Notes: a model not told the origin generated them from the letters alone. Counted from the stretch's first letter, positions 6,928-47,774 are shown. The stretch: 64,000 nucleotides of DNA from Basidiobolus meristosporus CBS 931.73 (GCA_002104905.1 MCFE01000476.1:1-64000); one strand, 5' to 3'. A program made the numbers and translations.

Positions 6928-7157
6928 AACAAACACGTAGAATAGGTTAAGGAAGGTCCCAAGAACATGTGTGCAAAGTTTGGGGCTGTTTGGACAACTT
7001 TGAGAATTTTCATGTTCTGGGTACCTGGTATTTTGGTGAAAATATTCTAAGTAAATCCCGACAAGGAATTTGGTCAGTATTCTTTAGGATTTGAAGGTAA
7101 TGATCCAAGTGACTAAGTTAGGTGAATATTTAGGTGGAAATACGAATTTTTACAACA
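6809..7157 (-). repeat. Copia-A1 5' LTR
   Basis: Direct repeat of 2472-2821, immediately followed by the PBS. Confidence 0.95.
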
Positions 7158-16770: not shown

Positions 16771-17839
16771 TGTGGTGGTGTATAGGTCTAAGGGAGAGAT
16801 ATGTCCAACACTTCTCAAGTATTTGTGTGTGGGGTGCTCACTGGGTGTGATAGCCTCTGGCAAAAGCTTGCTAGGAATACTTGGGTTCTGTCACTAATCT
16901 AATGTGATGGGGAACAAAGCCACAAACTTCTCAAGGGAAAACTATTGAGCTACAATCCCCAATTGAGTTGGCGTCTTAACAAAAGTATGTGCTGGGTTCA
17001 GTGTCCTTTGAGTAGACAATGTGCTAAAGCTTCCAAAGTCCAAACAGTTGTAGACTCCACCAGCAGGGACTAGATAAAATGCAGCTGTGGTCAATAGTTA
17101 CAAAGACAGAAAAGTATCTTTGACTGTACAAGAACAAACTTGGGAAAGAATCAAATATATTGAAAGATACCTACCCCAAGTATTGCTCATAATTAGTGCC
17201 TCTAAGGTCAGTTGGCTGTCAGCGTGGTTTCCTGGGAGTGTCCTGTAGTCTGGGGTTGGAAGTTCAGGTAGCAGCAGGTAGCAATGATCACACTAAGCAA
17301 CAAGTTGGTATATTGATAAAAGGGATGATGATTTATTGCTGAGGGATAACCTCCTTTATATACTTTTCTTACTGACAAAGTGATTACTAATCATAGTGTT
17401 CCAGAAGGTTCTGGATATCAATAGAGATCTTAATGACACCAGAATGACCTAAGAATGTTCTAAGTATGTGCCGGAAGGTTCCAAGAGGCACAGCACATCC
17501 AACCAATCAGGAATCAGTATTATGAAACCTGTGCAACATAGGGATAGCATATATGGTATGAAAGTGGTAGGGACGGTGCCATGGACTGGTCATGTGTCAC
17601 AGGTACTGGCGCAGGTACTTGCCTAATATAGAAACACTTATAGCTAGTAATCTAACCTAGAGTGACGGATAACTTATGCAATAAGGTAAGCAGCTATGAT
17701 AGTCAGCCAGCTTATGCAATAGTACTGATCAAGTAAGACAAATGGGATAAAACTAAAATAAGGGTAGTAGAGAAATAGGGAAGTAGAAAATATAAGAATG
17801 AGCACATCTGTCAGTGGGTGTCACTGTGACCCCACTACA
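16771..17839. repeat. LTR-X solo LTR (1069 bp), TSD ACAG/ATGG (ancestral ACGG)
   Basis: TGTGGTGG...CCACTACA termini; the empty paralogous site at 21562-21565 reads ACGG. Confidence 0.88.
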
Positions 17840-18921
17840 ATGGCATTGAATCAAAGCAGTCTTGTCCATGGGGCAAATAGTCCAAGGCTAAGCAGAATGG
17901 GCTTGACTTGTTGCATGACCATTATCCTTGATTCAAGCAAGCAAACAGATTTTAGGCCAGCATTGGTATTATAAGAAGGTTTCTTAAGAATAGCAGATAT
18001 TATCAAAGGTAGAAGAACAAGGGTGCCAAGGCTAAAAGCCTGCAGCTTCCCAAAGAGCTTGTCACAAGCAGGGCTAAAAGCTCCAAACAAGTGGCAATGA
18101 AACTACAGGAAGCCAGAACAGGCCAGTAATAGACAGGCAGGCAGAAACAGATGCACCAGTGCAGCATTTATCAAGGAGAAAACATAGTTCAATACAAGTA
18201 GTACTCAGTAACAGTAGCAATGAGGGACTTGACAGTGGTAAATACCCACGGCTTTCTCAGGAGCCTGTCACAAGCAAGGTTGATAGCTCCAAGCAAGCTG
18301 CAAAGAAATGTCAGGTTGATAGAGGAGTGCTGACAAGGAACAAGCAGGCAAAAATGGATGCACCAGTGCAGCATCCATCAATGCAAAAACAGAGTACAAT
18401 GCTAGAAGCACTTTGTGAAAGTAGCAGTGAAAGACTTGACAGTCATAACCCTACAAAAATAATTTGGTCCCACAGGTGGATCCAATCCGGATCATCCATC
18501 CAGATCCCATTTAGAGACCATCATAATAACAGCAGCTTGGAATTAGTGACCCTCCCAACAATCTAATAATAAGATCATGATGGTGTTTTGCAAATTTTAC
18601 AGCCAAATAAAGGGATAAAACTTGACAATTTTTAATTGGTGCTGTGACAATATTTGCATGGTATTGTTGCAGTCTTTCAGCGCTCTATTACTATTTTAAG
18701 TGGATCTAGTTGGCCAGGACTTCCAATTGCCTTATATGGCAAGAAACTTGATGGCAATTTGATGGCCTCACAGCTAGACTCTGATGGCATTTTTTGGCAG
18801 TATGATGGCCTACTGCTGGTTTTGTATAATGCCACTGTACCACTTTACCATATGATATTTCCTTTTTCTACCTCCCCTTGTGCAATTCATATATTCCACT
18901 GTAGAATCACCTTTCTTTACA

Positions 18922-21432: not shown

Positions 21433-21975
21433 TGAATGATTGAATATGACTTAGGTGGCAAAACACTGACTGTGAACCTTGTAATATTTCCTAAGCTGTC
21501 TACGTACTTCATGGCCAAGAGGCTTGCCTCGATAGCCACATGGTCTTTTATCTCTTCTCTTACGGTGTTGAGTCAAATTAGTCTTGTCCATGGGGCAAAC
21601 AGTTTGACATTCAACAATGTAATGCTATTATATCACTTTTTGGTCAATACTCATGTGAACTTAAGACAGTCTTGTATTTGAGACATTGCACCTACATGAA
21701 TGTAAGATTCAATGATGACCTGCCATAGTAAGCATTCTAAATAAAGTTGTGGTACCACATACATATGTATATGTAACACTATTTCCCATTTGGTTTAACT
21801 CACTTCAATATATAAGCCGCCAACAAATAAAGCAATGTTGTCTGGTTCTCAACCAAGCCCCACTGCTGACGGCAACAGAAGAATGGTTGGACAACAGCTT
21901 GCTTTGACATTCAGTGTAACAAGCGGGGCTACATCCAAAAAAGGCACTGTGGAGAGTGTGCCCATTGAAGGTATT

Positions 21976-22709
21976 AGACTTGTTCCGTTGGATAGTGCCA
22001 CATTGAGCCATGAGTGCCAAACAATGCCATAGTGTGCCAGAGAGGTCAAGTGAGCCTATACTTGGCCACAGAGTGTGAAACATAGCTCTGCATCTTCATG
22101 TAAAGCAACCCCTGTGTTTCACCCATTGCGCAGGAGAAAATCCATTTTTTGACCTTTTTTTGTGGATCAATGTAGCTCAGGATGTGTAAGAGCACAGGAG
22201 AACTGAAGATATGCATCTGGTACTCAATACCCATGGCACTCTGAATCTAGCTCCTGTAGCTTGTATCATGTCACAAAAATGAATGGCACTATCTTGGTCC
22301 ACTGGTACTATCTGGCACTATATTTAAATATTAGCCCTAAAGTAAGATCTATACAAAGCACTTAGAGTGCCAGATAGTACCAGTGGACCAAGATAGTGCC
22401 ATTCATTTTTGTGACATGATACAAGCTACAGGAGCTAGATTCAGAGTGCCATGGGTATTGAGTACCAGATGCATATCTTCAATCTGCTTGTGCTCTAACA
22501 CATCCTGCACAACATTGATCCAAAAAAAAAGGTCCAAAAATGGATTTTCTCCAACACAATGGGTGAAACACAGGGGCTGCTTTGCATGAAGATGCGGAGC
22601 TATGTTTCACACTCTGTGGCCAGGTAGAGGCTCACTTGACCTCTCTGACACACTATGGCATCATTTGGCACTCATGGCTCAATGTGGCCCTATCCAACAG
22701 AACAAGTCT
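21976..22709. mobile_element. Fold-back MITE copy 1 (734 bp, about 347-bp inverted arms, 40-bp spacer), TSD ATT/AAT
   Basis: AGACTTGTTCCGTTGG...CCAACAGAACAAGTCT; the empty site near 41785-41805 supports a 3-bp duplication. Confidence 0.93.
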
Positions 22710-24136
22710 AATAATGTGGACTCCTCTGGCACTCAGTCAAGTAAGCAATTGAGAACCTCTGTGGAGCCACAAGCTGACCATTATGCTCAGGCAGATGAAA
22801 ATGTAGCAAACGCAGTACCCTCAGTGGAAGATCAGCAAGTGGCCATGATATCATCACCACCACCCATATTAGCAAGTATGTTGTCAGCTCATACCAAAGC
22901 ATTTATGTAGCAATTAGGTGCAGTGGCTGATAGTATAGATGCAATGGCCCAGGCAAATCAGGAAGTAGTCCAGAAACAGTATGAGTGGAAAATATTTGTA
23001 GAGCAATCAATATCCCAGGTAGAGAAAGCAGTGTCATTGCTGCAAAGAAGGAACTCAAGTAGCTCAATGACATAGCCAAGAATTGAGCCATTTCCCAATG
23101 TAACAGCAGAGGAACACTGTACAGTTGTTGAAGCACAACAACAGTGCCCAAAGATAAAGCCCACAGAAAAGCCTATCACTGTGTGGGAGGGAGACAATGT
23201 GGTACTTATACCAAAGCCTAAAAATCAAAAGACATTGAAGATCTGTTAAGCTGTTGAGTGCAATAATGAAGAATGGGCTAATATACAAGAGGCCATCAGA
23301 AGTCTAGCATGCCATCACCATACAGCTGGCATACCATGGGACCATCAGCAACTCAAGGCCATGCAGAATGCACTTGAATTGTTCCATGAGCATTAGACTT
23401 GTTCCATCGTACCATGCCAGGGCGCGCGGCGTGATCCGCGGTTGCAAAGAACAATCAGGCGCGATATTATAGCTACCAGAAGGCAGGATTGTTCTGGGAC
23501 AATTTCGCACTATGCGGGACAATCTTGCACACTATGGCACAATCTGACACAATGAGGTTGGCGTGGATGATTGCGCCAACTTGTAATGTTTGCATCACGT
23601 GCGCAATCGGATACCGCTATAATGGCAGGTAAAATCCGGTATTTGGATATGTTTCTTTAATGTAAATGGAAATAAATGTGTATCACACTATAAACTACAC
23701 TAATACTTACCATTTTGGTTACCCTCACTCCAATTGGACAGTATCTCAGTGGTTAATTGGTCCAAAAGTATCCTGAAGCTGGCAGCCCCCAATTGGCTCA
23801 TTGACTACTGAAAAGCTACCTGATTTGCCATCAAATATCCCATTTTGCCCATTGAACAAGTAAATCCCTGATCCTAGTGATTGGGCAAGGTGTCATAGCT
23901 AGCACGCAAGCAATTGTGTAGGTGCAAAACAGATCCAATAGCTGCACTAGTATTACAGATGACTTATATATATGCAGGGTGTTTATTTATAGGGGTTCTG
24001 TCTCAAATGTGAGACGACCTTGATATTACTTATATCAAAAATTTGATGATCTCTGATTTGCAATGGCTTGATTTGGATTGCAAAAAAAAAGGGTTGTTGG
24101 GATCATTACAAATGTGAGCGATTTAAAGCAATCGCA

Positions 24137-25384
24137 TCATCTTCTCCTGGGTTTTTTTCTCACAGGGATTACTACTGAAGCATTTGGTAGTGACTCACTT
24201 TGCACACCTATACTACTTCCTGGCTGACTATCATCTTGGCTACTTGTGTATTTGTAGTCAGTATTTTGCCTCCTAGTTAATGAGTGCGATGCTGCAGCTT
24301 GGCCACGCTGAATTGCTCTGACTGAACCAACTGAACCGGCCTGTTGTGCCACGCGCTGACGCGTTCTTTTACTTGCCAAGGGCTCCGGTGGTTGAGGCAC
24401 TTCATGTTGGTCATCATCAGTCAGTTCACCAGAAGTAACTTGCTGATGGTCAGGTGAAACGGCACGTGCAGGCGTGCCTTGATGTGTTGAGATGGCCCTT
24501 GGCTGAGTTTGATGTGATGCCGCATGTTGATGTGACTCGGTCCGCTCCAATGGACTTGTGTCTAAATGAGCAGTTTGGTGAGTTCTCGTAGTTTTGCTCT
24601 GAAGTGTGCGTGTTGACCCAACGCGCATTGACTCGATGCGGGGCGTTCTGGTAAAGGGTGTTGGTGTGGTCTGGACTGACGTTTGCCGGCACGCTGTAGT
24701 TGCAAGAGATGGTAGGGAATCCAGCAAGGCGTGCTGGTGTGATCTGGACAATGTTGCTCACGGTCTGTATTCTTCCTCCTGAAGCTCTCCATCTGATTCC
24801 TCAAGGTATTCACTTACCCTCTGTCTGATACTTTGGAGCTGTTGCCTGGATGATTCCTGTGTATATTGCTCTTGGAAGCCACTTAGCTCTACTAATATAT
24901 CACGTAGTACATTAGTCATTTGAGGCAAAAACTCATTCAAAATCTCTTTGGTTCCCAAAGTTGAGGCACAAACAGACGTGTCCAGCCCATACTGTGCAAA
25001 TTGCGCGCAAAATCGTTCCCGTGCGGCTTCTTTGTCAAATCCTCTCACTCTCAGCTCATTCTTGATTTCAATACTTGTCTTGTTATATATCTTTTTACAT
25101 ACATTGGCTGGCATCTTGATGTAGAACTCATGCCACAGCTTTCTACTCAAATTCTTCCATCTTTGTTGACTCTCTGAGGTATCTAGTTCTGCTAGATTAA
25201 TCAGTAGTGCCCAAATATCTGTATGAAGGCTCATCATAGACACTTGGGCCATACTAAAATCATTTGGCAAGAACTTGAACGGATCCAACATTGACTTTTC
25301 CGTTCCGGACCGCGTTTGTGAGCTGGGGGATGGGTTTTGTCTGGGTTGTACTAAAGATGAGTTGAGGCTTGGTATGGGGACCAT
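24137..25384 (-). CDS. ORF2 of the PHIS element (about 415 aa; one in-frame TGA at 24758-24760); helical N-half, disordered C-half, basic NLS-like tail
   Basis: ORFs 24758-25384 and 24137-24751 are in the same frame, separated only by TGA-GCA-ACA; ends PVRKKPRRR; tail conserved in the decayed copy at 58505-58930. Confidence 0.75.
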
Positions 25385-25715
25385 AGCAACAGATTTGGAT
25401 ACTTATACAGCAGTATATTGGCATCAACCTGGTCTTTTATGAAATATATATGAAAACTAAAGTGATTGTTGAATTTTCCATATATTATGCATGATGCATC
25501 TTGGATCGCGTTGATATGGATCAGATCACATCAATTGCAGATTTCCTATTTGATTATAGACCTATGATTAAAGCATCAATAAAAGTACCAAGGCATTGTT
25601 TGCGGATGATTTTTGCAACATAATGATGGGATACATGGCAATTGATGGAGATTTAACCATAATGTGTTAAAAATCAGATAAATAACGCAGATTGCGCCGA
25701 ATTGATTCAAACCGC

Positions 25716-26794
25716 TGTGGTGGTGTATAAGTCCAAAAGGGCAAAATACAGCCAACACTTCTCAAGTGTGAATGTGTGTGGGGTGTTCACTGGGTGCGAT
25801 AACCTCTGGCAAAAGCTTGCTAGGAATACTGGGTCTTTTATCTAATCTAAGTGATGGGGGATAAAGCCTCAAGCTTGTCAAGGGAAAACTATTGAACTAC
25901 AATCCCCAACTTAGTTGGCGTCTTAACAAAAGTTTATAATGGCTTCGACGTCCTTTGAGATGACAATGTACTAAAGCTTCCAAAGTCAAAACAACTGTAA
26001 ACTCCACCAACAGGGACTTGATAAGAATGCAGCTTTGACCAATAGTTACAAAGACTGAAAAGTATCTTTGCCTGTACAAGAACAAACTTGGGAAAACAAA
26101 CAAATATAATAAAATATACCTACTCTGAGTATTCCTCACGAGTGGTGCCTCCAAGGTCAGTTGGCTGTCAGCGCGGTTTCCTGGGAGTGTCGTCAGATCT
26201 GAGTCAGAAAATAGTGGTAATAGGTAGCGGTGATCTCGCTAATCAATAAGTCGGAATATTGGAAGAGGGATGATTTATTTTAAGGGATAGCCTCCCTTAT
26301 ATACTTTTTTGCTGCTCAATTTCTTGCTAGAAAATACTTTCCGGAAGTTTCCAGAAGGTAGTAGACAACCAATCATGTCTTTGTGTACTAAAAATAGCGC
26401 AAATTCTTGGCGGATTGTTCCATGAGACATAGTAGTACCTAGCCAATCAGGTAGTGGTAACATGAAACCTCTGTGTCATGTGGTTGCCTCTTATGGTAGT
26501 GAGATGGGGGATTATGAAACCAAGATGGTCACGTGACATGGGCACTGTTGGGGTACTTGCCTTATAAGGTAACTATCTTATCTTGGCATCTCGGCAAGGA
26601 ATAAGAATAGCTTGTGCAATGGGTTAATAGGGACAAATAGCTTGTCAGGTTGCATAGTAATAATCACATAGACAAAAATAGGAAATATTGCAAATTTGGG
26701 ATGATAATAATATAGGCGGGGTAATCCTTTTTAGGGAAGTGAATGCATAAGAATGAGCACATCTGCCTGTGGGTGTCACTGTGACCCCACTACA
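25716..26794. repeat. LTR-X solo LTR (1079 bp), TSD CCGC
   Basis: TG...CA termini; CCGC at 25712-25715 and 26795-26798. Confidence 0.92.
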
Positions 26795-26826
26795 CCGCCT
26801 CCATACAATCATCCATCAATTTTAAT

Positions 26827-27711
26827 ATGACTTACTCATCTGAATGGTCTTTTCTCATCAATCCCATCACTACCACTGGATTTCCTTTTGACACACTGGA
26901 GGAGATCTATTCCAAGTACTGTGGACCATCAACCCCAATCTACTCAAGGAGATCCCTTGTTAAGCTTCTCTGCTATTACAAGAACTATTGCCCTACAAGG
27001 TTTCATCCCACCATCCATGGCAACAAAAGTCCTAGAAGCTTTCATTCCCAGCTGACAGCAATGGAGAACCACCTTGCAGAGGGTATGAATGACTTAGAGC
27101 AAGCTTGGAATACTAGGTTCAGAAGCTCCAATAGACTTCCATATCCCAGAGTGTTCAGCAACAGGTTCCATATCAGGAGTATTTTGGATACCTTCCCAGT
27201 GAGGATTAACAGACCTTCTAGAGGGCAGAGGCACTTTTATTCTGGCAAGTACAAGGCACACTGTGTGAAGTTTCAAGCACTGTCTGACATTGAGGGTAAC
27301 ATCATCTGGTTTAGTGGGCCATTTGCTGGAAGTAGGCATGACAAAGCACTCTGGGTAGAGAATCATCCTGAATTCAGTAGAGGGGAGAAATGTATGGCAG
27401 ACTTGGCCTATATAGGAGAGAATTGTCAGAGATTAGGATGTATTACAGCTTATAGGAAGCCAAGGAATGGTGTGCTTAGCAGGAAGCAGAAGCTCTACAA
27501 TGAGATATTTGATCATTTCAGAGTAAGGGTAGAGCACACATTTGGATATCTGAAGAGATTCAGCATATTGGCAGGAAAATACAGAGGAAAGTCATATATA
27601 GGTGAAAACAGCAGAATAGGTAAAATAGTTAAGATACTTATTAATGCACAGTATGTTAATACAAGAAGACATCCACTGAGAGAAATGTGTCTGGAGCATT
27701 ATGAAGAGTAA
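26827..27711 (+). CDS. Intact DDE transposase, PIF/Harbinger-IS5-like (DDE_Tnp_4 type), 294 aa
   Basis: ILDTFPVRINRP, YSGKYKAHCVKFQ, SGPFAGSRHD, ADLAYIG, KPRNGVLS..Q.LYN, RVRVEHTFGYLKRFSIL..KYR. Confidence 0.93.
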   Translation: MTYSSEWSFLINPITTTGFPFDTLEEIYSKYCGPSTPIYSRRSLVKLLCYYKNYCPTRFHPTIHGNKSPRSFHSQLTAMENHLAEGMNDLEQAWNTRFRSSNRLPYPRVFSNRFHIRSILDTFPVRINRPSRGQRHFYSGKYKAHCVKFQALSDIEGNIIWFSGPFAGSRHDKALWVENHPEFSRGEKCMADLAYIGENCQRLGCITAYRKPRNGVLSRKQKLYNEIFDHFRVRVEHTFGYLKRFSILAGKYRGKSYIGENSRIGKIVKILINAQYVNTRRHPLREMCLEHYEE

Positions 27712-29629
27712 ATAAAGCAAGGAAAGCACTATTCTGAGCAACATAAGTAAGATTGAGTAAAATTACCAGTAACTGTATCATACCACTGGCATCATGGTAG
27801 AAACTATAGTGCCAGATAGTGCTGTAGAGTGCCAGATCAATCCGGCACTATAAACAGGCAGGCACTATGTGGCACTATCCAACGGAACAAGTCTATTATC
27901 CTGGATTCCAACAGGCAAATGGATTTTGGGCCAGCATTGGCATACTAAGAAAGTATCTTGAGAATAGCAGAAATTATCAAAGGCAGCAGAACAAGGGTGC
28001 CATGGCTAAAAACCAGCAGCTTCCTCAAGAGCCTGTTACAAGCAGGGCCAAGCAGGCAGTCATTGAAGCACCAGCACAATATTTATCAAGGAAAAAGTGT
28101 AGTACCACTCAAGAAGCCCCCAGTCAAAGTAGCAGTGAAGGATCTGGCAGTGATAAAAACCAGCTGCTGTTACTGGAGCCTGTCACAACTATGGTTGAGA
28201 GCTGAAAACAAGCTGAAAAGAAACACAGGTTGCCAGAAGAGTACCAGCAAGGGACAAGCAGGCCAAAACAGATGCATCAGAGCAGAATTTATTGAGGAGA
28301 AAATGTAGTTCTTTACAAGAAGCATTCAGACAAAGTAGCAGTGAAAGACCTGACAGTGATAAAGGAAAAGGTAAAGGGAAAAATGTCTACCCAAGCCTGA
28401 GACAGGGAGGCATGCAGAAGAAACTGCAGTTCTCCGCAATTAACACCACAAGCCAGGAACAGACTGAATCCCATCATAGCCAAGAAGAATTACCGACAAG
28501 AAAACAGCTGTTGGAAGCACAGCCAGTTCAGCTTCACTCCAGCAAGGTAGAAGAGTTTGATGAAAAAAGCAATTTGTCTACCACAGCATCCACATCCTCC
28601 ACAGCCTCCATTGTTGACAGAGTGGGGATCCCACTGCCAGACAAGGCTACAATGTCAAGAGCTCAAAAGACTATCACAATGCCTTCAGTGGAGCTTTGGA
28701 ACATTAATAGGCACACCAAGAGGTTGCAGCACTTCTTCAGGAGCAGTGCTCAAGAAAATGCACTGGAATATTGCAAGGATTTATTGCAAAGACTAGCAGA
28801 TAAGACGCTAGACCTTGCAGTGCTGGCTGAAGACCAGGATGTGTGGGAACCAGTGAATGAACAGTGGCATAAAGCCGTTGGGCTCCTGCCAAAGTCATGC
28901 AACCAGAGCATTACAACAGAAATACTTATTGAGTGGTGGATTTTAATGAAGTTACTTGCTGAGTGTGGGGTTGGGCTTAATGTTAGTGTAGGGTATAGAG
29001 ACTTGTATAGGTCTATACAATTGGCAATTGAGGTACAACTGAAGTTTCAATGGAAATAAATCAATTTGTATGCATGAAAAGTAAGAGAAATGGTTGAGGC
29101 AGGAACTAAGGAGTGTGAAAAAGAGGCAATAGCCAATTAACTCACACAAACATAGGAGGCAATAGAGTGTCTGGGATCAGAAAGTGAGCAAACTGACTGG
29201 GAACCAATCAAAAGGCACTTATACATTGTTGTGATGAAAAATTTTGACAAAGTCTTTTGTGAAATCTGGGGTGCAATTATTTTTCATTGGTCTCTGGACA
29301 GTGTCCTGACAAGATCAGTATCTCTTAGTCATGGGACATTAACTTTGTGAAGGCCTTTTGATGGGATCATCTCAATAGTTTTTCATAGGGATAATGGTAA
29401 AGGTAAACAGAAAAGGTCTTCCAAAGTCAGAGACAGGGAGCCTGAGGAAAAAGCAGCAGTTCTCAGCAGTTAATGCTGTCATCCCAGAACAGGCTGAGTC
29501 CCATCATAGCCCAGAAGAATTACCAACAAGACATTAGTTGTTTTCTCAAGTGTTGGAGGTGCAGCCAGTGGAACTGGGCTCCAGTGAGGTAGATGAGTTT
29601 GCAGAGAAAATCAATTTATCTGCCATCAC

Positions 29630-29985
29630 CTTTTATAATCACATGACATCCTTGACCTTTCATGATCTGGCCATATCATGTTGGTGAAGAATTCCCAGTT
29701 CTTTCTGGAGAGCTCTACTACATTTTAGCAACTCTTGGAGAGCTCCAAGTCAACAATTCACAATGAAATATTCTATGGAAGCTTCCCTTTGAAGTTTATG
29801 TAGCTCAAAACTATATATGGCCACTGCATGTCACATGACCTAGTCACATGATCAGCTGACCCTTGACATATCCACATGTGATGTTCTAATATGTTCTTCA
29901 GTATATTTTTATCTTAGAACAGTTGCTGTGCCTCACCCCAGAGCTCCATAAGTACTAGCCAATATCCCTGGGCATCCATATTGCC
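29630..29985. repeat. About 350-bp unclassified dispersed repeat (second copy reversed at about 39185-39543)
   Basis: Clear similarity between the two copies; boundaries uncertain; possibly a solo LTR. Confidence 0.5.
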
Positions 29986-30003
29986 AGAAGTATATAAATT
30001 CCC

Positions 30004-30348
30004 TGTTGTAGCAGTCTTGGCAATATTGAAAGTGAATGGGAGAACAAGTAGATTATGTGGTTTCACTTAATTATTTATCAATGTTAAGTAGTATTTATAA
30101 ATTTACTTGGTATTGGCATAACAAACATGTAGAATAGGCTTAGGAAGGTCCCAAGAGCATGTGTGCAAAGTTTGGGGCTGTATGGACAACTCAGAGAATT
30201 TTATGTTCTGGGTACCTGGTATATTGGTGAAAATACTCTAAGTAAATCCCAACAAGGAGTCTGGTCAGTATTCACTTGGATTGGAAGGTATTGATCTAAG
30301 TGACTAAGTTAGGCAAATATTTAGGTGGAATTACATACTTCTAGAACA
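30004..30348 (-). repeat. Copia-A solo LTR (decayed, no TSD match)
   Basis: Homology to 2472-2821. Confidence 0.85.
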
Positions 30349-31300
30349 GTTCTATCCCCCTTTATATGCTCTGCAGTCTGATAAATGTTGGTCATGAATA
30401 ACTAGCCTTGTCTTATTGATCAGCACCCAAGTCCTTTCCTGGTCCTCCCTAGCCCATCTCTACTCTTCTGCCTTAGATCCGCTGATAACACTATCCCCAC
30501 ACCTTCCACTGTAGGCAGAGTGGAGATCACACTGACGGACAAAGCAACAACATCAAGCACTCAAAGTCTATCACAATGTATAGGAACCAGTGAGTAAGCA
30601 GTGGCATAAAGCCACAGGGCTCCTACAGAAGTCATGGAAAACGGGACATTGCAGCATAAGTTCCTATTGAATAAAGATTTTTATGGAGTTGCTTTTTGAG
30701 TGTGGGGCTGGGCCTAGTGTTAGTGGTGAGTATAGGGACTTGCATAAGTCAATATAATTGGCAATTAGAGTAAAACTGAAGTTTCAACACAAATAAAGCA
30801 ACTTGTATGTATGCAAATTAAGAGAATTGGTTGAGTCAGGAAGTAAGGAGTATGAAAATGAGCCATTAGCTAATCATTGGACACAAGTGTAGAAGCTGAT
30901 TGGGTGTACATGATCAAAAAGTGAGAGAATTGGTGGGGACCATTCAGATGCCACTGTTGTATTGTTGTGGTGATGAGTTTTGACTCAGTTTTTTGCAAAT
31001 CTGGGGGGCAATTACTTGTCAACAGTGCTTGCATAGTGTCCTGATAGGATCAATACCTTGTAGTCACAGGACTTTATTCATGTGATGATCTTTTGATGGT
31101 GTGGTGAGGCATAAGTCCAAGGGAAAGATACATCCAACACTTCTCAAGTGTTTTGTGTGTGGGGTGTTCACTGGGTGCAAGAACCACTGGCAACAGCTTG
31201 TTGGGAATACTTGGGTTCTCTTTCTACTCAAACATGGAGGGGAATAAAGTCAAAAGCTTGTCAAGGGAAAGCTATTGAGCTACAATCCCCAACTCAGCGG

Positions 31301-32370
31301 TGTGATGGTGTATAAGTCCAAGGGAGAGATATGTCCAACACTTCTCAAGTGTTTTGTGTGTGGGGTGCTCACTGGGTGCAATAACCTCTGGCAAAAGCTT
31401 GCTAGGAATACTTGGGTTCTGTCTCTAATCTAATGTGAACAGGAATAAAGCCATAAGCTTGTCAAGGGACAACTATTGAGCTACAATCCCCAACTTAGTT
31501 GGCGTCTTAACAAAAGTATGTGCTGGGTTCAGCGTCCTTTGAGATGACAATGTACTAAAGCTTCCAAAGTCAAAACAACTGTAAACTCCACCAGCAGGGA
31601 CTTGATAAGAATGCAGCTGTGGTCAATAGTTACAAAGAAAGAAAAGTATCTTTGCCTGTACAAGAACAAACTTGTGAAAGAATCAAATATAATAAATTAT
31701 ACCTACTCTGAGTATTCCTCACCAGTAGTGCCTCCAAGGTCAGTTGGCTGTCAGTGCGGTTTCCTGGGAGTGTCCTGTGGTCTGGGGTTGGAAGTTCAGG
31801 TAGCAGCAGGTAGCAGTGATCACACTAATCAACAAGTTGGTATATTGATAAAAGGGATGATGATTTATTGTAGAGGGACAGCCTCCCTTATATACTTTTC
31901 TCACTGGCTAAGTGATTACTAATCATGGTGTTCCAGAAGGTTCCGGATATCAATAGAAATCTTATTGACATCAGAATGACCTAAGAATTTTCTAAGTAGG
32001 TGCCGGAAGGTTCCAAGAGGCACAGCACATCCAACCAATCAGGAATCAGTATTCTGAAACCTGCGTAACATAAGGATACCATATATGGTATGGAAATGGT
32101 AGGGATGGTGACACGGGTTGGTCATGTGCCGCGGGTACTGGCGCTGGAACTTGCCTAATATAGAAGCACTTATAGCTAGTAATCTTACATAAAGTGAGGG
32201 GTAACTTATGCAATAAGGTAAGCAGGTGTGATAGTCAACTGGCTTATGGGATAGTACTGATTGGGTAAGACAAATGGGATAAAACTAAAATAAGTGTAGT
32301 AGAGATATGGAAAGTAGAAAATAAGGGAATGAGCACATCTGTCAGTGGGTGTCACTGTCATCCCACTACA
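31301..32370. repeat. LTR-X solo LTR nested in LTR-X, TSD GCGG/GCAG
   Basis: TGTGATGG...CCACTACA; host LTR sequence resumes at 32375. Confidence 0.9.
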
Positions 32371-32742
32371 GCAGGCATCTTAATAAATGTATTTGCTGGG
32401 AGCAGCATCCTTTGAGATGACAATGTGCTAAAGCTCCCAAGGTCAGATCAACTGTAAACTTCACCAGCAGGGACTTAATTAAAATGCAGCTGTTGTCAAC
32501 AGTTACAAAGACAGAGAGCTAACTTTCCCTGTACAAGAACAAACTTGGGAAAGAACAAAATATAATAAAAGATTCCAACTCTGAGTATTCCTCACAAATG
32601 GTGCCTCCAAGGTTAGATGGCCATCAGTGAGGTTTCTTGGGAGTGTCCTATGGTCTGGGACTGGAAGTTTAGGTAGCAGCAGGTAGCAGTGATCACACTA
32701 ATCTACAAGTCAGTTTGTTGACAAAAGGGATGATGATTTATT

Positions 32743-33476
32743 AGACTTGTTCTGTTGGATAGGGCCACATTGAGCCATGAGTGCCAAATGATGCCATAGT
32801 GTGCCAGAGAGGTCAAGTGAGCCTCTACCTGGCCACAGAGTGTGAAACATAGCTCCGCATCTTCATGCCAAGCAGCCCCTGTGTTTCACCCATTGTGTTG
32901 GAGAAAATCCATTTTTGGACCTTTTTTTTTGGATCAATGTTGTGCAGGATGTGTTAGAGCAAAAGCAGATTGAAGATATGCATCTGGTACTCAATACCCA
33001 TGGCACTCTGAATCTAGCTCCTGTAGCTTGTATCATGTCACAAAAATGAATGGCACTATCTTGGTCCACTGGTACTATCTGGCACTATAAGTGCTTTGTA
33101 TAGATCTTACTTTAGGGCTAATATTTAAATATAGTGCCAGATAGTACCAGTGGACCAAGATAGTGCCATTCATTTTTGTGACATGATACAAGCTACAGGA
33201 GCTAGATTCAGAGTGCCATGGGTATTGAGTACCAGATGCATATCTTCAGCTCTCCTGTGCTCTTACACATCCTGAGCTACATTGATCCACAAAAAAAGGT
33301 CAAAAAATGGATTTTCTCCTGCGCAATGGGTGAAACACAGGGGTTGCTTTACATGAAGATGCAGAGCTATGTTTCACACTCTGTGGCCAAGTATAGGCTC
33401 ACTTGACCTCTCTGGCACACTATGGCATTGTTTGGCACTCATGGCTCAATGTGGCACTATCCAACGGAACAAGTCT
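32743..33476. mobile_element. Fold-back MITE copy 2 (734 bp), TSD ATT
   Basis: ATT at 32740-32742 and 33477-33479; arms 32743-33089 and 33130-33476. Confidence 0.95.
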
Positions 33477-34191
33477 ATTGTTAAGGAATTGCCTCCCTTG
33501 TATACGTTTTACGTTATCTAAGTGATCACCAATCATGGTGTTCCAGAAGGTTGTGGAGATCCATAGAAATCTCAATCTCATCAGAATGAGCTAAGAATGA
33601 CGTGAGTAGATGCTGGAAGGTTTTAAGAGACACAGCATATCCAACCAACCAGGATCAGTATTCTAAGATGTGTGCAACATAGGGATGCCATATATGGAAT
33701 GAAGAAGGTAGGGATTGTGACGCCATTTAATCAAATGCTACAAGTCCTGGTGGAGGTACTTGCCTAATATAGAAGGACTTACATCTAGTAATCTTACACA
33801 GAAGTATGGAGTAGGCCCATCTGTCAGTGGGTGTCACTGTGACCCCACTGCAACAGGATCATCACAATTATTATTTACAGGGACTCTAAAATAATGGTTC
33901 TGGAAACTTTAGCTATACTTTTCTGATAAAGCTTAACTAGTAAAGGCCAAGACACCAGATTAATTGAGATCCATTTTTGTGTTGATAGGTGTAGTAGATA
34001 AATGAGAATTGCATTATCAATCAACTGATATCTTGGCAACTGCCAAGTGTTTAGATAGATTTTAAAGGACTAATCACTTGGAAAGGCTTGGCAGAGCAGT
34101 TGATGGTCTAATGACCCTATGCAAATGGATCATATATACAGCTAAAAATAGGTTCTGAGACGGGATAAAATAAACTGTAACTGAAGTTAGT

Positions 34192-34924
34192 AGACTTGTT
34201 CCGTTGGAGAGTGCCACATTGAGCCATGAGTGCCAAATGATGCCATAGTGTGCCAGAGAGGTCAAGTGAGCCTCTACCTGGCCACAGAGTGTGAAACATA
34301 GCTCCGCATCTTCATGCCAAGCAGCCCCTGTGTTTCACCCATTGTGTTGGAGAAAATCCATTTTTGGACCTTTTTTTTTGGATCAATGTTGTGCAGGATG
34401 TGTTAGAGCACAAGCAGATTGAAGATATGCATCTGGTACTCAATACCCATGGCACTCTGAATCTAGCTCCTGTAGCTTGTATCATGTCACAAAAATGAAT
34501 GGCACTATCTTGGTCCACTGGTACTATCTGGCACTATAAGTGCTTTGTATAGATCTTACTTTAGGGCTAATATTTAAATATAGTGCCAGATAGTACCAGT
34601 GGACCAAGATAGTGCCATTCATTTTTGTGACATGATACAAGCTACAGGAGCTAGATTCAGAGTGCCATGGGTATTGAGTACCAGATGCATATCTTCAGTT
34701 CTCCTGTGCTCTTACACATCCTGAGCTACATTGCTCCACAAAAAAGGTCAAAAAATGGATTTTCTCCTGTGCAATGGGTGAAACACAGGGGTTGCTTTAC
34801 ATGAAGATGCAGAGCTATGTTTCACACTCTGTGGCCAAGTATAGGCTCACTTGACCTCTCTGGCACACTATGGCATTGTTTGGCACTTATGGCTCAATGT
34901 GGCACTATCCAACGGAACAAGTCT
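34192..34924. mobile_element. Fold-back MITE copy 3 (733 bp), TSD AGT
   Basis: AGT at 34189-34191 and 34925-34927; arms 34192-34538 and 34579-34924. Confidence 0.95.
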
Positions 34925-35049: not shown

Positions 35050-36620
35050 AAGCATCACCAACAATGGTGTATGGTTTCCAGGAGTTGTTTTTGGCATCCT
35101 AACCTTTACACTTGGCAAAATAGAGGCAATTTGGCTCTTCTCCATACTTATACTTTTACATGGTCTGGGCACAAGAGGTCCATAGAATAGGTCTGAGAGG
35201 GTCTTAAGAATATGGGTGCAAAGTTTGGGGTTGTTTGGACAGCTTATCAAAATTTTATGTTAGGGGCACCTAATATTTTGGTGAAAGTATTCCAACCAAA
35301 TCACAACAAGGAATTTGATCAGTATTCTCTAAGATTTTAGGTAATGATCTAAGTGACCTTGCTAGGCAGATATTTAGGTGGAATTACAAATTTCTACTAC
35401 ACTCCCACTCAACTAAATGTTCAAACTGACTAATACTAATTTTGACCCAAGATATTCAAATCTGTCTCTAGCTAATGGTTTGGTGAATATGTCTGCAATC
35501 ACTTCATCCAAAGAACAGTAAGCTAAGTTAGCTTTGTTACTCTTTAAAGCATCACATCTGAAATTGTGTCTAATATCTATATGCTTAGTTCTAGCATGAA
35601 AAGTTAGATTTCTATTTAATTTTATTAATCCTTGATTATCTTGAAATAAAGTTACAGGTGTTTTTGACATAGGCCTGAATCTTGAAAAAAGTTTCCTTAA
35701 CCACATTGCTTTTTCATAGCTTCACAGGTTGCCATATGTCTTTGTGCTAGAAAGGGCTACACTTGGTTGCTTTATTGAATACCATGAAATTCCTCCATTA
35801 CAGTAAAGAAAGGTGAATTCTGTGTTGGACATTCTGTCTTCCAAATTTTGTCCCAACTTGCACCAGAGTATCCAGCAAGATCTTGTTCTAAATGCTTATA
35901 GCTGTACCTAAAGCAGATATCAGCAGTTCCCTTTAGGTATCTAAATATCCACTTAACTGCTGTAATAAGATCAGATCCATAGTTCTGATTATGCTGGCTG
36001 GCAACTCCCACTAAATATGAGATATCTTGATGTGGTCAAAGCATGCTTTGTATCAGACTACCAGCCATAGATTGATAAGGGTAGTTGGGGCTTTTGAATG
36101 GCACCAAGCTCTCTTGAATTGGTAGAGCTTTGACCAAGTTAAGGTTTGTCTCCAATGGGTTAGCTGCTGGTTTACAGTCCTTTGTTTGGTACATGTTAAG
36201 TATATCTTGAATATAACTGCATTTGCTTAGGGTGATAATATGGGTACTTTGATCTATGGAGAACTTTATCCCCAAGTGGTAACTGAGTTCTCCTAGATCA
36301 GACATCTTGAATTCTTTAGATAGACTGGATTTAATCACTTCTAATGTTTCTAGGTTATTGCCAGCTATAATAATATCATTTGCATATAGAGCTACTAGAG
36401 CTGGATTTGCTCTATATGGCTTATTGTATATACTATAGTCAGTATTACTCCTTTTGAAGCTCAAAGATTTGAACTAAGAGTCTATCTTGCAATTCTAGGC
36501 ACTTAGTTATTATTCAAGACTGCACAGATTTTTTCAGCTTGCAAACCAAAGAGGGTTATATTGGTCAAGAAACCAATTAGGCTCATCTAAATACATGCCA
36601 TCATCAAGTTATCCATCCAA
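35050..36620 (-). mobile_element. Decayed Copia-A 3' part (LTR to 35401, PPT, RH/RT fragments)
   Basis: CTCCCACTC PPT after the LTR; ORF fragments TKHIDIRHNF and LYANDIII. Confidence 0.85.
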
Positions 36621-40615: not shown

Positions 40616-41620
40616 TGTGGTGGTATATAAGTCCAAGGGAGAGATACATCCAACACTTCTCAGGTTTTTTGTGTGTGGGGTGTCCACTGGATGCAATATC
40701 CTCTGGCAAAAGCTTGTTAGGAATACTTGGGTTATGACTCTACTTTAATGTGAAGGGGAATAAAGCCACAAGCTTGTCAAGGAAAAACTATTGAGCTACA
40801 ATCCCCAACTTAGTTGGCATCTTTACAAAAGTATGTGCTGGGTGCAGCATGCTTTGAGATGAAAGTGTACTAAAGCTTTCAAGGTCAGAGCAACTGTAAA
40901 CCTCACCAGCAGGGACTTGATTAAAATGCAGCTGTTGTCAACAGCTACAAAGACAGAGAGCTATCTTTCCCTGCACAAGAACAAACTTGGGAAAGAATAA
41001 AATATAATAAAAGATTCCAACTCTGAGTATTCCTCACAAATGGTGTCTCCAAGGTTGGAGGGCCATCAGTGTGGTTTCTTGGGAGTGTCCTGTGGTCTGG
41101 GACTGGAAGTTTGGGTAGCCTCTTACATGAGCAAAATTGATCTATAATTAACAAAGTGGGGATGTTGCTTTGCTCCAGTAGATTGGATATATGTCAAACA
41201 CTAATCAAGTGTTTTGTGTGTGGTGTGTTTACTGCGTGCAATAACCGCTGGCAAAAGCTTGCTAGGCATACCTGGGTTCTGACTCTGCTCAAATGTGAAG
41301 GGGAACAAAGCCACAAGCGTGTCAAGGGAAGACTATTGAGCCACAATCCCAAAATTAGTTAGCATCTTTACAAAAGTATTTTCAGGGTACCGTGTCTTTT
41401 GATATGACAATGTACTGAAGCTTCCAAAGGCAAAACAACTCTAAACTTCACCAGCAGGGACTTGATAACAATGCAGCTGCTGTCAATAGTTACAAAGGCA
41501 GAGAAGTAACTTGACCTGTACAAAAACAAACTTGGGAATGAATAAATTATGATCAAAGATACAAACTATGAGTGTTCCTTGCAAGTAGCACCTCCAAGGT
41601 TAGTTGGCTATTGGTGTGGT
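40616..41620. repeat. Two tandem truncated LTR-X pieces (second is the variant subfamily)
   Basis: TGTGGTGGTATATAAG start; junction near 41118 to the variant end also seen at 45000-45092. Confidence 0.7.
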
Positions 41621-41659
41621 ATCTTGGGAGTGTTTATGTTGCCCAGAAATAAAGCAAAG

Positions 41660-42290
41660 TTGTCTGCTTCTTTATCAGTCCATACTGCTGAGAGCAGCAG
41701 AAGAACAGTGAGACAACAGCTTGTGCTGACATTTAGTGCAACAAGCAAGGATGCAGCCAAGAAAGGTCATGTTGAAGGTGTGCCCATTAAAGGTGATAAA
41801 GTGGACTCCTCAGGCTCTTAGTTTGATAGCTATTGCAGAGTCTCTAGGCTGCAGCAGGACAACCATAATGCTCAGGCAGAGGAAAATGTAGCAAATGCAG
41901 TATTTCTGCTGAAAGACCAGCAAATGACCATTATTATATCACCACCGTCATTTTCAGCAAGTATGTTCTCAGCTCATACCAAAGCATTAATGAGGCAAGT
42001 AGGTGCAGTGGCTGAGAGGATTGGTGAGATGGCCCAGAAAAATCAGGAAATAGTCCAGAGACAGATATAGCAGATAATACATAGAGAGCAATCCATATAA
42101 CAGGTAGAAAACGCAGTATTAGGTTACAAAGAAGAAGCTCAAGTAGCCCAATGTCACAGGCAAGAGTTGGGCCATGTTCCAATGAAAAAGCAGAGGAACC
42201 CCATACAGTCTTTGAAGTACAACAACAGTGTCCAGAGATAAAGCCCAAAGAAAAACATATTGCAGCATGGGAGGGAGAGACTCTGATCTT
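41660..42290 (+). pseudogene. ORF-Y N-terminal fragment without the MITE (empty-site paralog)
   Basis: Collinear with 21880-21975 plus 22710-23190. Confidence 0.65.
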
Positions 42291-42627: not shown

Positions 42628-43977
42628 GGTTAAGGGGATTAAGCTTGCTATATCTTGGGTTGCTACTTTGCTCTGGTACTGTGTCTCTATTCTTGAGAAA
42701 GACTGCCTGGTCTACTTGAAGTTAAAAAAGACGGAAAAGTACTGCTGCTGTAAAGAACTGTTAAGTGAGATATATTGCATTAGAGTGGGGGCTTTGCCCT
42801 TTAAGAAGACCCCTAGAGAAGTAAAAGTTCATATGCTAAGGAGGTTATAGTTAGACAAATTCCAACTTATGCAATGTGTAGAGAGATGAAGCTCTGAAGA
42901 AATGAGCTATCCCAGCAAGGAGTCCAGATCAATAAGGGGCACTGTAGATAATATGTATATCCATGCTATGATCCCTATTATTGCAGCATAGAGGAGCTAT
43001 GTTCATAACTTATATATACCTGTATCTTGATGATATTATTTCAGTCATGCAAGTACATGCATTCCTGTAGCAAACTTGCACAAGTCTGTAGCCACATCAA
43101 ATGAAATGATACACAAGCACATTGAAGCTACCTGCAGCCCTAGTTTGGAGTGGTATTTGTGATATACCAGTGGTACTATTGGTAGTACCAATGATCCTGA
43201 GGCTCTATGGGACACTTATTGAACTAGCTGCATGTCTACATTAGGTACTAGAAACAGTGGCAGGAGATACATCCAGAGACTTCTCAATATGAATTACTAC
43301 TGTCATCAAGAAAAGTGCTGATGGGGATTGTGACCAAGGTAAATGCAAATAGTCTTTATATACACTGTAGGATATTACATCAAATACTACTGAGGTATGT
43401 ACTAGTTGTCTTACACCAGTACACATATCACCAGGCATATAGTGCTTGCTGATCATTTATGTAAACATGAATGAGATGTTAATCTTGCAATTATAATCAT
43501 ATCAGGCTACTTGCAGCTCCCAGTTACAGACCACAAGAAAGTAATGGTATGTGCCATCAAAATGCTGAGAAAAGTGGCTTTTCAAGGAGTTTAATTTGTT
43601 CAAATCCAATCAAGCCTGTGAAAAGGGATAACTGACTTAAATGGATAACCTATTAGAATGAAACATCTTAGATTCAAACTTCTCTGGACACAGGAGGCTT
43701 CTGAATGCTCCCAAGGATCAACAACCTGTGGATATGCTACCTGCATGATCCAGATCAAGATCATCAAGAAAAACTCAGCAGTCTGCTTCTTCAAGACCAG
43801 ATACTGGGCAAAGAAACTATCAGGAAGCACTCAGTTTCCAAACAGAGGTAGGTGATGCCTAAGCCAGATTAGGATTGTCCAGTATTCTATATAAACCAGT
43901 AGTCCTACTACACAAGGATAATGAGCAGTCATGCTATGGAAAGCAGCAGAGCAGTCCAGGGAAAACTACATATTTGG

Positions 43978-45092
43978 TGCAGAGAAGTCACAATGATACC
44001 CACTGACAGATGTGCTAATTCCCATATTTTATACTTCCCTATTTTTCTACTACCCTTATTTTAGTATTATCCCATTTGTCCTACTTGATCAGTACTATCC
44101 CATAAGCTGGTTGACTCTCATCACTGCTTACCTTATGGCATACATTATCCCTTACTTTATGTAAGATTACTTAATGTAAGTGCTTCTATATTAGGCAGGT
44201 ACCTGTGCTAGTACCTATGACACATGACCCAACTATGTCACCATCACTATCTTTTTCGCACCATATATGGTATCCCTTTGTTACACAGGTTTCAGGAAGC
44301 TAATTCCTGGTTAGTTGGCTATGTTGTGCCTGTTAGAACATTCCAGCATCTACTCAGAATGTTCTTAGCTCATTTTGATGTCATTAAGATTGCTATTTGA
44401 CTACCAGAGCCTTGTGGAACACCATGATTAGTAAGCACTTTGCCAGTGACCAAAGTATACAAGGGAGGTAATCCCTTAACAATTAATTATCATTGCTTTT
44501 ATCCTTATACCAACTTCTTGATTAGTGTAATCACTGCTACCAGCTGCTACCTGAACTTCAAATCCCAGACCTCAGGTCATTCCTAGGAAACTGAGCTGGC
44601 AGCCAACTGACCTTGGAGGCACTAGTTGTGAGGAATACTCATAATAGGCATCTTTGTATTTTATTCTTTCTCAAGTTTGTTCATGTACAGGTCAGGTTGC
44701 TTTTCTGCCTTTGTAACTATTGACAGCTGCTGCATTGTTATCAAGTCCCTGCTGGTGAAGTTTAGAGTTGTTTTGACTTTGGAAGCTTCAGTACATTGTC
44801 ATCTCAAAAGACACTGTACCCTGCAAATACTTTTGTTAAGATGCTAACTAAGTTTGAGATTGTGGTTCAATTGTCTTCCCTTGACACACTGGTGGCTTTA
44901 TTCCCCTTCACATTAGAGAAGAGCCAGAACCTAGGTATTCCTAACAAGCTTTTGCCGGTAATTATTGCACCCAGTAAACACACCACACATAAAACACTTG
45001 ATTAGTGTTTGACATATATCCAATATACTGGAGCAAAGCTACATCCCCACTTTGTTAATTATTGATTAATTTTGCTCAGGTAAGAGGCAGCA
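43978..45092. repeat. LTR-X variant (reverse orientation)
   Basis: Homology to LTR-X over about 1 kb; different terminal segment of about 110 bp. Confidence 0.7.
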
Positions 45093-47774
45093 GTAAGCCT
45101 GCAAGCACAGCTATCTAATAGTAGAGAGTATGCCTGAATATGCTCAGTATCTGAGAGCACTTGCTCTGATCAAGTGGCTGATGCTCATCTATACCTATTC
45201 TGTGATGAGATCAGAGTTCAGACTCCAAATAATCTGATCTGAAGTATCCAATCAACAGTATAGGCTTGTACTTGGTTATCATCCAACTTCTTCTGCTGTT
45301 ACTTGTGCTCAACTTTCTTTCCTGCTACTATACCCAAAAGCTTTCTTACCTCAAAGTGTATCTGCATCTTGATTCTCCAAAGTCTGTAGTCCTGTTGCAA
45401 GTCTTTATAGAAGAATTGTAGAGGAACACAGAGTTTAGTTAGTATTGTATTCACTAAAACTTGACATGATTTTTATTACAGTTCCAGCAGCCCTTTATAT
45501 TCAACTTGCCAGATCAATTACTGACTAATTGAATTTCCAAATGTAATTTGTGGCTGACAACTTATTTGACTGTATCATCATCATCCAATTAGATCCAACT
45601 TACTATATCTATTTCTGTTTGTTAAGGATCTGCTGAATCTTCTGCTGACTAATGATACTGAGTTGATAGATAATACTGATATACTGATAGGCTAAGCATA
45701 AAGCTAATTGCTTGAACTAAAAACTGATCTACCTAAACATGTAAGCAGTACATCTTATCATTCTCCCCTACTAAAGTTGAGGGGGTTGTCCTGAATCTCT
45801 TTTCTTGTAATACCAATATATATAGCTCAGTATTGTCAGTAAGTCCTGAAAGCCTGAGTCTGTCTCTGTGAGCCAAATGTTCCAGATATTTCCTTTTTTG
45901 TCCACTAGTTGGTAAGTTGCAAAAAGACATTCTCTGATGGTCTTGAGTGGTCCCATCCATTGTGACTGGAACTTCTTCCAAGTGTTGTTTCTCATTAATA
46001 CCAAGTTCCCAACAGCCAATGCTTCTGGTGATATAGTCTTATCAATTCTCTGCTTAGTCTTTTCTACACTTTGAGATACTGTGGCCTGTGCCTCTTGACA
46101 TCTTTATTCCAATTGCTGATGTCTACTTGACTGACTGAGCTCATCTTCTAAGGCATCTGTTAGCTTTGGTTGTGTGAGATATCCTGTAATCCTTGGTTTA
46201 CATTCATCCAATAAGTAAAATGGCAATTATTGGGTGGTGTTGTGCACTCTGACTCTGAGGGCAAAAAGTGCTTGGTCTATACACTCCTCCCATCTACTGA
46301 GAGCTCCATTTGCTTATGTAGTTAGCATTATTGCAAATAATTCATATAACTGCTCAGTGACTCCATTAATTCTAGCCTGATATGCCAAGGTTTTCAAAAG
46401 CTTGATCTGCTGCACTTCCAGGTACACTTCCAATGCCTTTGCCATATGGTATGCTTCTGTACCAGATGTAATTTCTACAGGGCATCCAAGCTTCATATGG
46501 ATCTTGCGGTAGAAGAAACTTGCAGCTTCTTGTTCACTGACTACAGGTAGAGCTTTGGCTACTGGCCATTTAGTGGCATGGTCAATTGCTACTAGGGTCC
46601 ATGGATTGCATTTCCTGGTGGTTGGTAGTCTTCTTGAAGAGTCAATCCCCCATCTCTCAAATGGTCTCACAGGCTCCAGCAGAAGGAGTTTGGTGTTTCT
46701 TTGTGGTTGGCCTTGGTTGATTTGGCAATATGGGCTTTTTTTCACTTGCTTCTCAATATCTTGTTTCATTCTGGGCTATCATGCTCTAGCATTTACCAGG
46801 CTATAGGTTACTACAATTCCAAGATGTCCATATCAATTGCATAGCTTATGTATTAAAACCAGGCAAGCACCAAAAGGGCAATAGGCAAAGGGTCTTCCAT
46901 TAACAATCTGGTACAGTATTTCATTCTGTACTACAAATTTGCTGGCTATGTCCCTGATTTTTCTTTTGATCTCTTCATCCACCTGATTAGGAGTGCCTTG
47001 GGCCTCCAAGTACTTTGGCAATAATCTAGGCCAATCTGAGTCATACACTAAGCTGAATTGTGCAACTTGTGCTGGTCTTGATAAGACATCAGCAACTGTG
47101 TTGTTCTTCTCACAGCAGAAGGCAATATCCAAGTCAAATTGTTGGGTGTATTCATTTAATCTTGTCATTTTTCTGCATAGTACTTTCTGAGTAAATATGT
47201 ACCTGAATGAGATGTGACCAGCTTTCAGAGTGCACTTCAGTCCCTCTATATAGCATCTCCAGATCTTCAAGCAGTGTATTATTGCAAATATCTCCTTCCC
47301 ATGTGCTTGGTAGTTCTGTTTTGCTGTGATCCAATTCCTCGATTCAGCAGCAACTGAATAGGGCTTTCCTTCATGTTTTTGGCTCAGTATTCCATCAATT
47401 GCATCCACTGAATCATCTGTGCACAGAGTAACCATTGTTATAAAGTCTGGAATTCTTAGGCTTGGCAGCTTAGCAGGTTTATTCTTGAGTGTTGGAAAGA
47501 CAGACTCACAGGCTATGTCCCACTTTAAGGTGTTGTCTTTCTTGAGGATATCAGTTTAAGAGGCCATAGTACTGACTAAGGACCTGACAAATCTCCAATA
47601 ATAGAAACTATACCAGGGAAGGATCTCAGTCCTGATATGCAATGGGGCTGCTACAGATTCTTGATGACTTTAACCTTCATGGGGTCTAAGGTCATTCTTA
47701 TGCAAGTCGCTATGTGACTCAGGTACTCAACATGTTCCTTCAAGAATTCACATTTTGCTAGCTTGCCAAATGGC

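Follow-up and report, generated by a model that had tools for sequence, protein, structure and literature searches.

The locus examined here raises the question of how a sequence of some 734 bp, almost all of it palindrome, came to stand three times between nucleotides 21,976 and 34,924 of a stretch of fungal DNA, and which transposase moved it. We analyzed a stretch of 64,000 nucleotides from Basidiobolus meristosporus CBS 931.73 (GCA_002104905.1, MCFE01000476.1:1-64000; hereafter the window), and our copy counts and element searches apply to this single 64-kb window. The three units are copies of a MITE (miniature inverted-repeat transposable element), each of which was inserted as one whole unit with a 3-bp duplication of its target. 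Beside them stands a 4.5-kb element of PIF/Harbinger type that carries a transposase gene (coordinates of all features are collected in Table 1). The MITE is probably a non-autonomous, whole-element fold-back member of PIF/Harbinger, mobilized in trans by the DDE transposase of the family through its terminus and a short repeated motif.

When copy 1 was reverse-complemented, the three copies aligned with 98.6–99.3% identity (5–10 differences per pair in 734 positions), and copy 1 therefore lies in the opposite orientation to copies 2 and 3. In each unit, two inverted arms of 347 nt flank a unique spacer of 40 nt, so that palindrome accounts for 94.6% of its length (2 × 347 of 734 nt), with 93% complementarity between the arms. 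Folding of the corresponding RNA gave a single 347-bp hairpin of −624.8 kcal/mol (z = −51 against shuffled sequences). The two arms differ from each other at 21 fixed positions that are common to all three copies. A first-pass annotation of this DNA had described three copies of 733–734 bp with the first inverted, an arm/spacer/arm layout that was about 95% palindrome, fixed arm differences shared by the copies, and a transcript hairpin of about 345 bp; alignment and folding confirmed this description, the hairpin as a computed fold. The unit is non-coding: the longest open reading frame (ORF) lying fully within copy 2 encodes 68 aa, blastx detected no protein-level similarity to the proteins of the 4.5-kb element, and an exact look-up of two ORFs inside the MITE returned no record. 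With a length under about 800 bp, no coding capacity, terminal repeats, target-site duplications (TSDs) and homogeneous copies, it has the properties of a MITE, and its inverted arms occupy nearly the entire element, as in a fold-back. As to the distribution of changes within the arms, the inner 119 nt (arm positions 229–347, e.g. 32971-33089 and 33130-33248) are identical between arms in all copies apart from two copy-specific bases (345 and 348), the outer 46 nt show only a few copy-specific changes, and the middle is 11.5% diverged.

All three copies are bordered by 3 bp: ATT/ATT at copy 2, AGT/AGT at copy 3 and ATT/AAT at copy 1. Because the insertions landed in older repeats, the window also holds paralogous empty sites. 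Three paralogs of the copy 2 site read through one ATT exactly where the filled site reads ATT-MITE-ATT. A paralog of the copy 1 site near 41794-41796, 77% identical, lacks the element and has GAT at the site, and this, together with the ATT/AAT mismatch, agrees with a single later base substitution in one of the two TSD copies. Recombination or inversion was also considered as the source of the mismatched TSD and was rejected, with the flanks of copy 2 intact and a point change fitting the diverged paralog better. The arm differences are the same in every copy, which indicates that the palindrome predates the copies and was copied as a whole. The proposal in the first-pass annotation that the palindrome transposes as a unit is thus upheld by the shared arm differences, the flanking duplications and the three empty sites of copy 2.

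The ends of the MITE link it to the 4.5-kb element. With up to 3 mismatches allowed, the window contains seven occurrences of the terminal 28-mer, against 0 expected. Four of them are exact, namely three MITE ends and 27867-27894, where the 4.5-kb element has its right end; of the other three MITE ends, one deviates at 1 position and two at 2. The match between MITE and right end extends to 34 nt with 2 mismatches (E = 8e-8), whereas the left end of the element has only 11 contiguous nt in common with the MITE ends, and the left and right ends of the element are alike at 19 of 27 positions (by eye). A 16-mer from the inner end of the MITE arm is found again at 27805-27820. These correspondences, including the contrast between 28 nt at the right end and 11 nt at the left, had been noticed previously and were reproduced here. 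The further claim that the MITE consists of two right ends holds for its termini, both of which are of the right-end type; for the remaining ~310 nt of each arm it overstates the relationship. Local alignment, blastn at word size 7, nhmmer with --max, and blastx found no source for this interior in the 4.5-kb element, in a second left end of the family or in four related contigs, and past the terminal repeat no homology to the right subterminal region was detected; only the terminus and short motifs matched. Thus, the MITE arms do not represent copies of the element's right end.

The short motif TGGYACT (AGTRCCA on the other strand) is present 13–14 times per MITE, that is, at 18 per kb against a background of 0.37 per kb (~50-fold). 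Within the arm, the sites at positions 19 and 38 face one way and those at 243, 259, 309, 328 and 338 the other, forming clusters at 19–44 and 243–344 on either side of ~200 nt of filler that is unrelated to the 4.5-kb element. In that element the 7-mer lies 25, 67 and 87 nt from the right end, whereas its strict form is absent from the left end. All 11 plus-strand occurrences of the related 8-mer GGCACTAT in the window fall in the MITEs or in the right end of the element. Contigs from other samples, with a transposase only ~62% identical to the one in the window, also retain both the terminal 11 nt and the motifs at their right ends. In two of these the right end shows that terminal 11-mer together with ATAGTGCC motifs, and the flanks start with ATT or AAT, which indicates that an A-W-T target and the end architecture are conserved across species. 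Conservation at this distance argues that the motifs are functional, and they are most likely protein-binding sites. All 21 of the fixed arm differences lie at positions 47–228, between the motif clusters (calculated probability ~8e-6 if placed uniformly); either selection has kept the motif-bearing parts symmetric, or repair, possibly templated by the hairpin, has homogenized them.

We next consider the 4.5-kb element as the candidate source of the transposase. The terminal 11-mer marks its boundaries at 23395 (plus strand) and 27894 (minus strand). Two empty paralogs with a single ATT each show that this interval, odd left end included, is one insertion, and the distinct left end is a real terminus, given these empty sites and a second left end at 57763. 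The predicted transposase matches DDE_Tnp_4 (PF13359, E = 3.3e-23) over residues 120–271, and D121, D192 and E236 are invariant in an alignment of its relatives. Three relatives were found, a cyanobacterial transposase among them, and the closest share its length of 294 aa at ~62% identity. On account of this equal length and the invariant D-D-E triad, the transposase ORF looks intact. The two ORFs at the position of the Harbinger second gene gave no Pfam match even at E = 10 and no homologue in a word-based homologue search, and a single-sequence AlphaFold (AF2) model of the second-gene ORF was of poor quality (predicted local distance difference test score, pLDDT, 48.7); the 4.5-kb element is therefore at most putatively autonomous.

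Canonical PIF/Harbinger elements target TTA/TAA (TWA) and have terminal repeats of 14–25 bp with a G(N)5GTT tip (PMC2213677). The 4.5-kb element shares with them a transposase of the IS5/DDE_Tnp_4 type and a 3-bp TSD (as does the MITE). Its terminal repeats are short and imperfect and have GTT at positions 7–9, as in the canonical tip, but A in place of G at position 1. A putative divergent second gene would also fit the superfamily, in which such a gene encodes a DNA-binding protein of Myb/SANT/MADF-like type; the two ORFs lie at the expected place, but their product is unrecognizable. Another parse of the boundaries, moved over by one base to give TTA as the TSD and a repeat starting at G, was rejected because it destroys the duplications and the fit to the empty sites.

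From the ends, the motifs and the transposase gene we infer the acting transposase, the role of the motif as a binding site and the origin of the palindrome. Each of the three units was inserted as a 734-bp whole that duplicated a 3-bp A-N-T target, probably by cut-and-paste movement, and their termini are the right-end-type terminal repeat of the neighboring element. The DDE transposase of the family, possibly with a partner protein, would recognize the terminal repeat and the motifs in trans, excise the palindrome and reinsert it, often nearby. The palindrome itself probably has a single origin, in template switching or fold-back synthesis while a right end of some family member was being repaired; the filler would then have diverged, with amplification coming later.

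The copies retain traces of this history. At positions 11 and 21 of one terminus, copies 1 and 2 have the same derived bases, the original ones being kept in copy 3, in the opposite arm and at the element's right end. Derived changes shared at two different loci imply at least two rounds of MITE movement and a tolerance of change at these two positions. No copy is farther than about 7 kb from the 4.5-kb element and the other 51 kb contain none, and this clustering suggests local reinsertion (roughly P = 0.01, judged after the fact).

Several observations weigh against the proposed relationship. The unmatched ~310 nt of each arm mean that, judged by sequence, this 4.5-kb copy is not the direct parent of the MITE. 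The targets ATT, AGT and AAT conform to A-N-T instead of the canonical TWA. The second gene of the element is split over two frames and has no recognizable DNA-binding domain. A 1079-bp insertion resembling a solo long terminal repeat (LTR) reaches to within 32 nt of the transposase ATG on its upstream side and may have disabled expression of the gene. Finally, the evidence comes from three copies in one window, and their proximity to the element was assessed after the fact.

Some of these points would be explained by a different autonomous partner elsewhere in the genome, with right-type repeats at both ends and arm-like subterminal regions, to which the 4.5-kb element would be a cousin sharing the terminal repeat. 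Of the alternatives this one fares best, and we consider it possible but unlikely. It would account for an arm interior unrelated to the 4.5-kb element and for the LTR-like insertion in the promoter region of the local copy, and divergence within the family is visible in the window, for example in the left end at 57763, which is 82% identical. However, three of the six MITE ends are identical to the right end of this very element at 28 of 28 positions, whereas the cross-species relatives retain only about 11–13 terminal nt. No autonomous element with two right-type ends is present in the window, and scans of metagenome contigs with the terminus and with a degenerate right-end pattern gave 0 matches each, in a collection that may lack this organism.

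A bolder extension of the proposal that a family transposase moves the MITE is that the transposition machinery needs only the right-type end, that two right ends serve at least as well as the natural left/right pair, and that the fold-back, with 13–14 putative binding motifs against ~3 on its parent, out-competes or titrates that parent. This is doubtful; if true, the MITE would offer a naturally occurring system in which to test end asymmetry and self-regulation of PIF/Harbinger elements.

Long inverted repeats also invite an explanation through RNA. The Mu killer locus of maize, reportedly described by Slotkin et al. in 2005, is said to be an inverted duplication of one DNA-transposon end that gives a long hairpin RNA, to contain transposase-gene sequence and not to be a mobile unit. 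Were the present palindrome likewise mainly a source of hairpin RNA, dicing of read-through transcripts would yield small RNAs that silence the transposon family. Any such transcript would certainly fold into a long hairpin, and the single near-perfect structure computed here would suit this role; in plants, small RNAs are documented to come from hairpins of MITEs (PMC3086885, PMC9641971). Against it, the 21-mers shared by MITE and element are confined to 27867-27894, beginning 156 nt beyond the stop codon (the ORF ends at 27711), and the two have no coding sequence in common; allowing up to 2 mismatches added one motif site only. The MITEs themselves would therefore be the main target of any small RNAs made from the arms. 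The present palindrome does not share substantial sequence with the transposase transcript and, unlike Mu killer, has only the terminal 28 nt in common with its candidate parent and is clearly mobile. The earlier suggestion that the hairpin feeds small interfering RNAs against the family thus has little support in the sequence comparison, except that the terminal repeat itself might be targeted, and we regard this explanation as quite improbable.

Some long-read libraries are known to produce long, near-perfect palindromes as artefacts and the region is repeat-rich, but fold-back chimeric reads or spread by segmental duplication deserve next to no credence, since the units stand at three loci with different flanks and in two orientations, carry the same 21 arm asymmetries everywhere, and are bordered by precise 3-bp duplications with empty paralogs that break exactly at the element ends, which together rule such explanations out.

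Table 1. Positions of the MITE copies, the 4.5-kb element and related features. Coordinates refer to the window except for the related contigs.
Feature	Position	Strand	Description
MITE copy 1	21976-22709, 734 bp	−, opposite to copies 2 and 3	Flanks ATT (21973-21975) / AAT (22710-22712)
MITE copy 2	32743-33476, 734 bp	+	TSD ATT/ATT; host site is a copy of the LTR-like repeat
MITE copy 3	34192-34924, 733 bp	+	TSD AGT/AGT
Empty sites for MITE copy 2	31867-31869; also 17335-17337 and 44481-44483	+; the latter minus strand	Single ATT each
4.5-kb PIF/Harbinger-type element	23395-27894, 4,500 bp	+	TSD ATT/ATT; unlike ends; nested solo-LTR-like insertion
Left end of 4.5-kb element	23395-23421	+	First 11 nt as right end, then 8/16; no strict motif copies
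Right end of 4.5-kb element	27805-27894	−	Terminal 28 nt as MITE ends; ATAGTGCC / TGGCACT subterminal motifs
Empty sites for 4.5-kb element	60221-60223; second at 62252-62254	+ (60221-60223)	One ATT each
Transposase ORF	26827-27711	+	294 aa, DDE_Tnp_4
Two adjoining ORFs, different frames	24137-25384	−	208 and 204 aa; position of Harbinger second gene
Solo-LTR-like insertion	25716-26794, 1079 bp	+, transposase strand	TG...CA ends; TSD CCGC; between two divergent genes
Left end of second, truncated family member	57763-58541	+	82% identical over 777 nt; same left-end type
Related contigs	L001 1552-1765; L003 956-1214		Logan runs ERR14656578, ERR14127509; 294-aa transposase, ~62% identical

Other features of the window touch on these elements. 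The nested LTR-like insertion could cut off the transposase promoter or instead replace it, and the same repeat occurs at five further places (16771-17839, 31098-32375, 32374-33857, 40616-41633 and 43976-45009) in copies of ~1.1 kb that are 73–86% identical, some with an internal tandem duplication of ~200 bp (31098-31297 and 31299-31498). In the truncated family member at 57763-58942, for which no right end was found, the match is broken by ~350 nt of unrelated sequence (58542-58890) that includes a short stretch resembling part of a contig with a Copia gag-integrase gene. To the right of the 4.5-kb element, the repeated region 27867-29059 contains ORFs of 112–255 aa (that of 255 aa, the only one scanned, had no Pfam match) and a 206-bp tandem duplication (28044-28157, 28250-28363), and has paralogs at 17921-18448, 60221-60931 and 62252-62548; the region probably represents the interior of an older repeat that took the insertions.

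Elsewhere, the window is rich in repeats, with a GC content of 0.37–0.43, and scans of it for tRNA genes and Rfam families gave no match. Several Ty1/Copia elements, of a kind that the human genome lacks, and one Gypsy-type RNase H fragment are present (2833-6936, 48158-50685, 63019-63990, 35413-36464 and 46833-47435), the Ty1/Copia elements having gag, integrase and RVT_2 spread over separate ORFs. One Copia gag-integrase has its best match, at 86%, in an ENA metagenome contig, and its named plant and algal matches are 25–29% identical.

Comparison with known systems places this MITE among several partial counterparts. Like mPing with Ping and Pong (Tourist-type), it is non-autonomous, of PIF/Harbinger type and flanked by a 3-bp TSD, and its movement in trans is our proposal. 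In contrast, mPing is an internal-deletion derivative that keeps both Ping ends, with 15-bp repeats and no palindrome, whereas the present MITE shares only 28–34 nt of one end with its candidate parent. The mobility of mPing is set by terminal and internal sequences together (PMC2836001, PMC9921582). For Emigrant and Lemi1, which are pogo-like (Tc1/mariner), PMC1636448 reports experiments in which element proteins bind the terminal repeats and subterminal motifs of the MITE, whereas binding in the present case is suggested by motif enrichment only. Galileo, Foldback and Tetris of Drosophila (PMC3688188, PMC4079207) resemble it in having long terminal repeats with multiple copies of short motifs, which in Galileo are transposase-binding sites; they differ in belonging to other superfamilies, with 7–9-bp duplications and kilobase-scale repeats that contain tandem arrays.

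With respect to origin, the gap-repair template switch described for Goblin and Ozma of Aedes (PMC3814204) offers a route by which one end is duplicated in inverted orientation to give long repeats or hairpin MITEs. Those elements are Tc1/mariner members with junctions traced to a parent, whereas here we infer the origin, the sequences searched having yielded no parent with a matching arm interior. PIF/Harbinger-type MITEs such as CbmPIF1a have repeats far longer than those of their autonomous relatives, and some families, PALTTAA1_CE, PALTTAA3_CE, Hairpin and others, have been called “essentially foldback structures,” with template switching during repair synthesis as their proposed origin (PMC3814204). 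Hairpin of Arabidopsis measures 238 bp with a 114-bp terminal inverted repeat and a TSD of CTWAR (table in PMC5172404).

Like Hairpin, the PALTTAA1_CE and PALTTAA3_CE elements of C. elegans and CbmPIF1a of C. briggsae, the present MITE is nearly all inverted repeat, is non-coding and moves as a unit. Those fold-back MITEs also have autonomous relatives with short terminal repeats, and the TSD of Hairpin has a PIF/Harbinger-like TWA core. Unlike them, the element described here is larger, at 734 bp, carries two motif clusters per arm around a filler, has an A-N-T TSD and adjoins a candidate parent with unlike ends. Whole-element fold-back MITEs, some of them of PIF/Harbinger type, and their likely origin have already been described, and the present MITE is therefore a new family of a known type; existing knowledge is unchanged in that such elements are known and the silencing idea lacks backing in shared sequence. 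What this family adds to its known counterparts is a clean natural case. A single 64-kb stretch brings together an almost perfect palindrome of 734 bp, which transposes intact, the corresponding empty sites, an unlike-ended candidate parent and a repeated motif that is conserved. The family would suit the study of the end sequences that a PIF/Harbinger transposase needs and of how fold-back MITEs originate.

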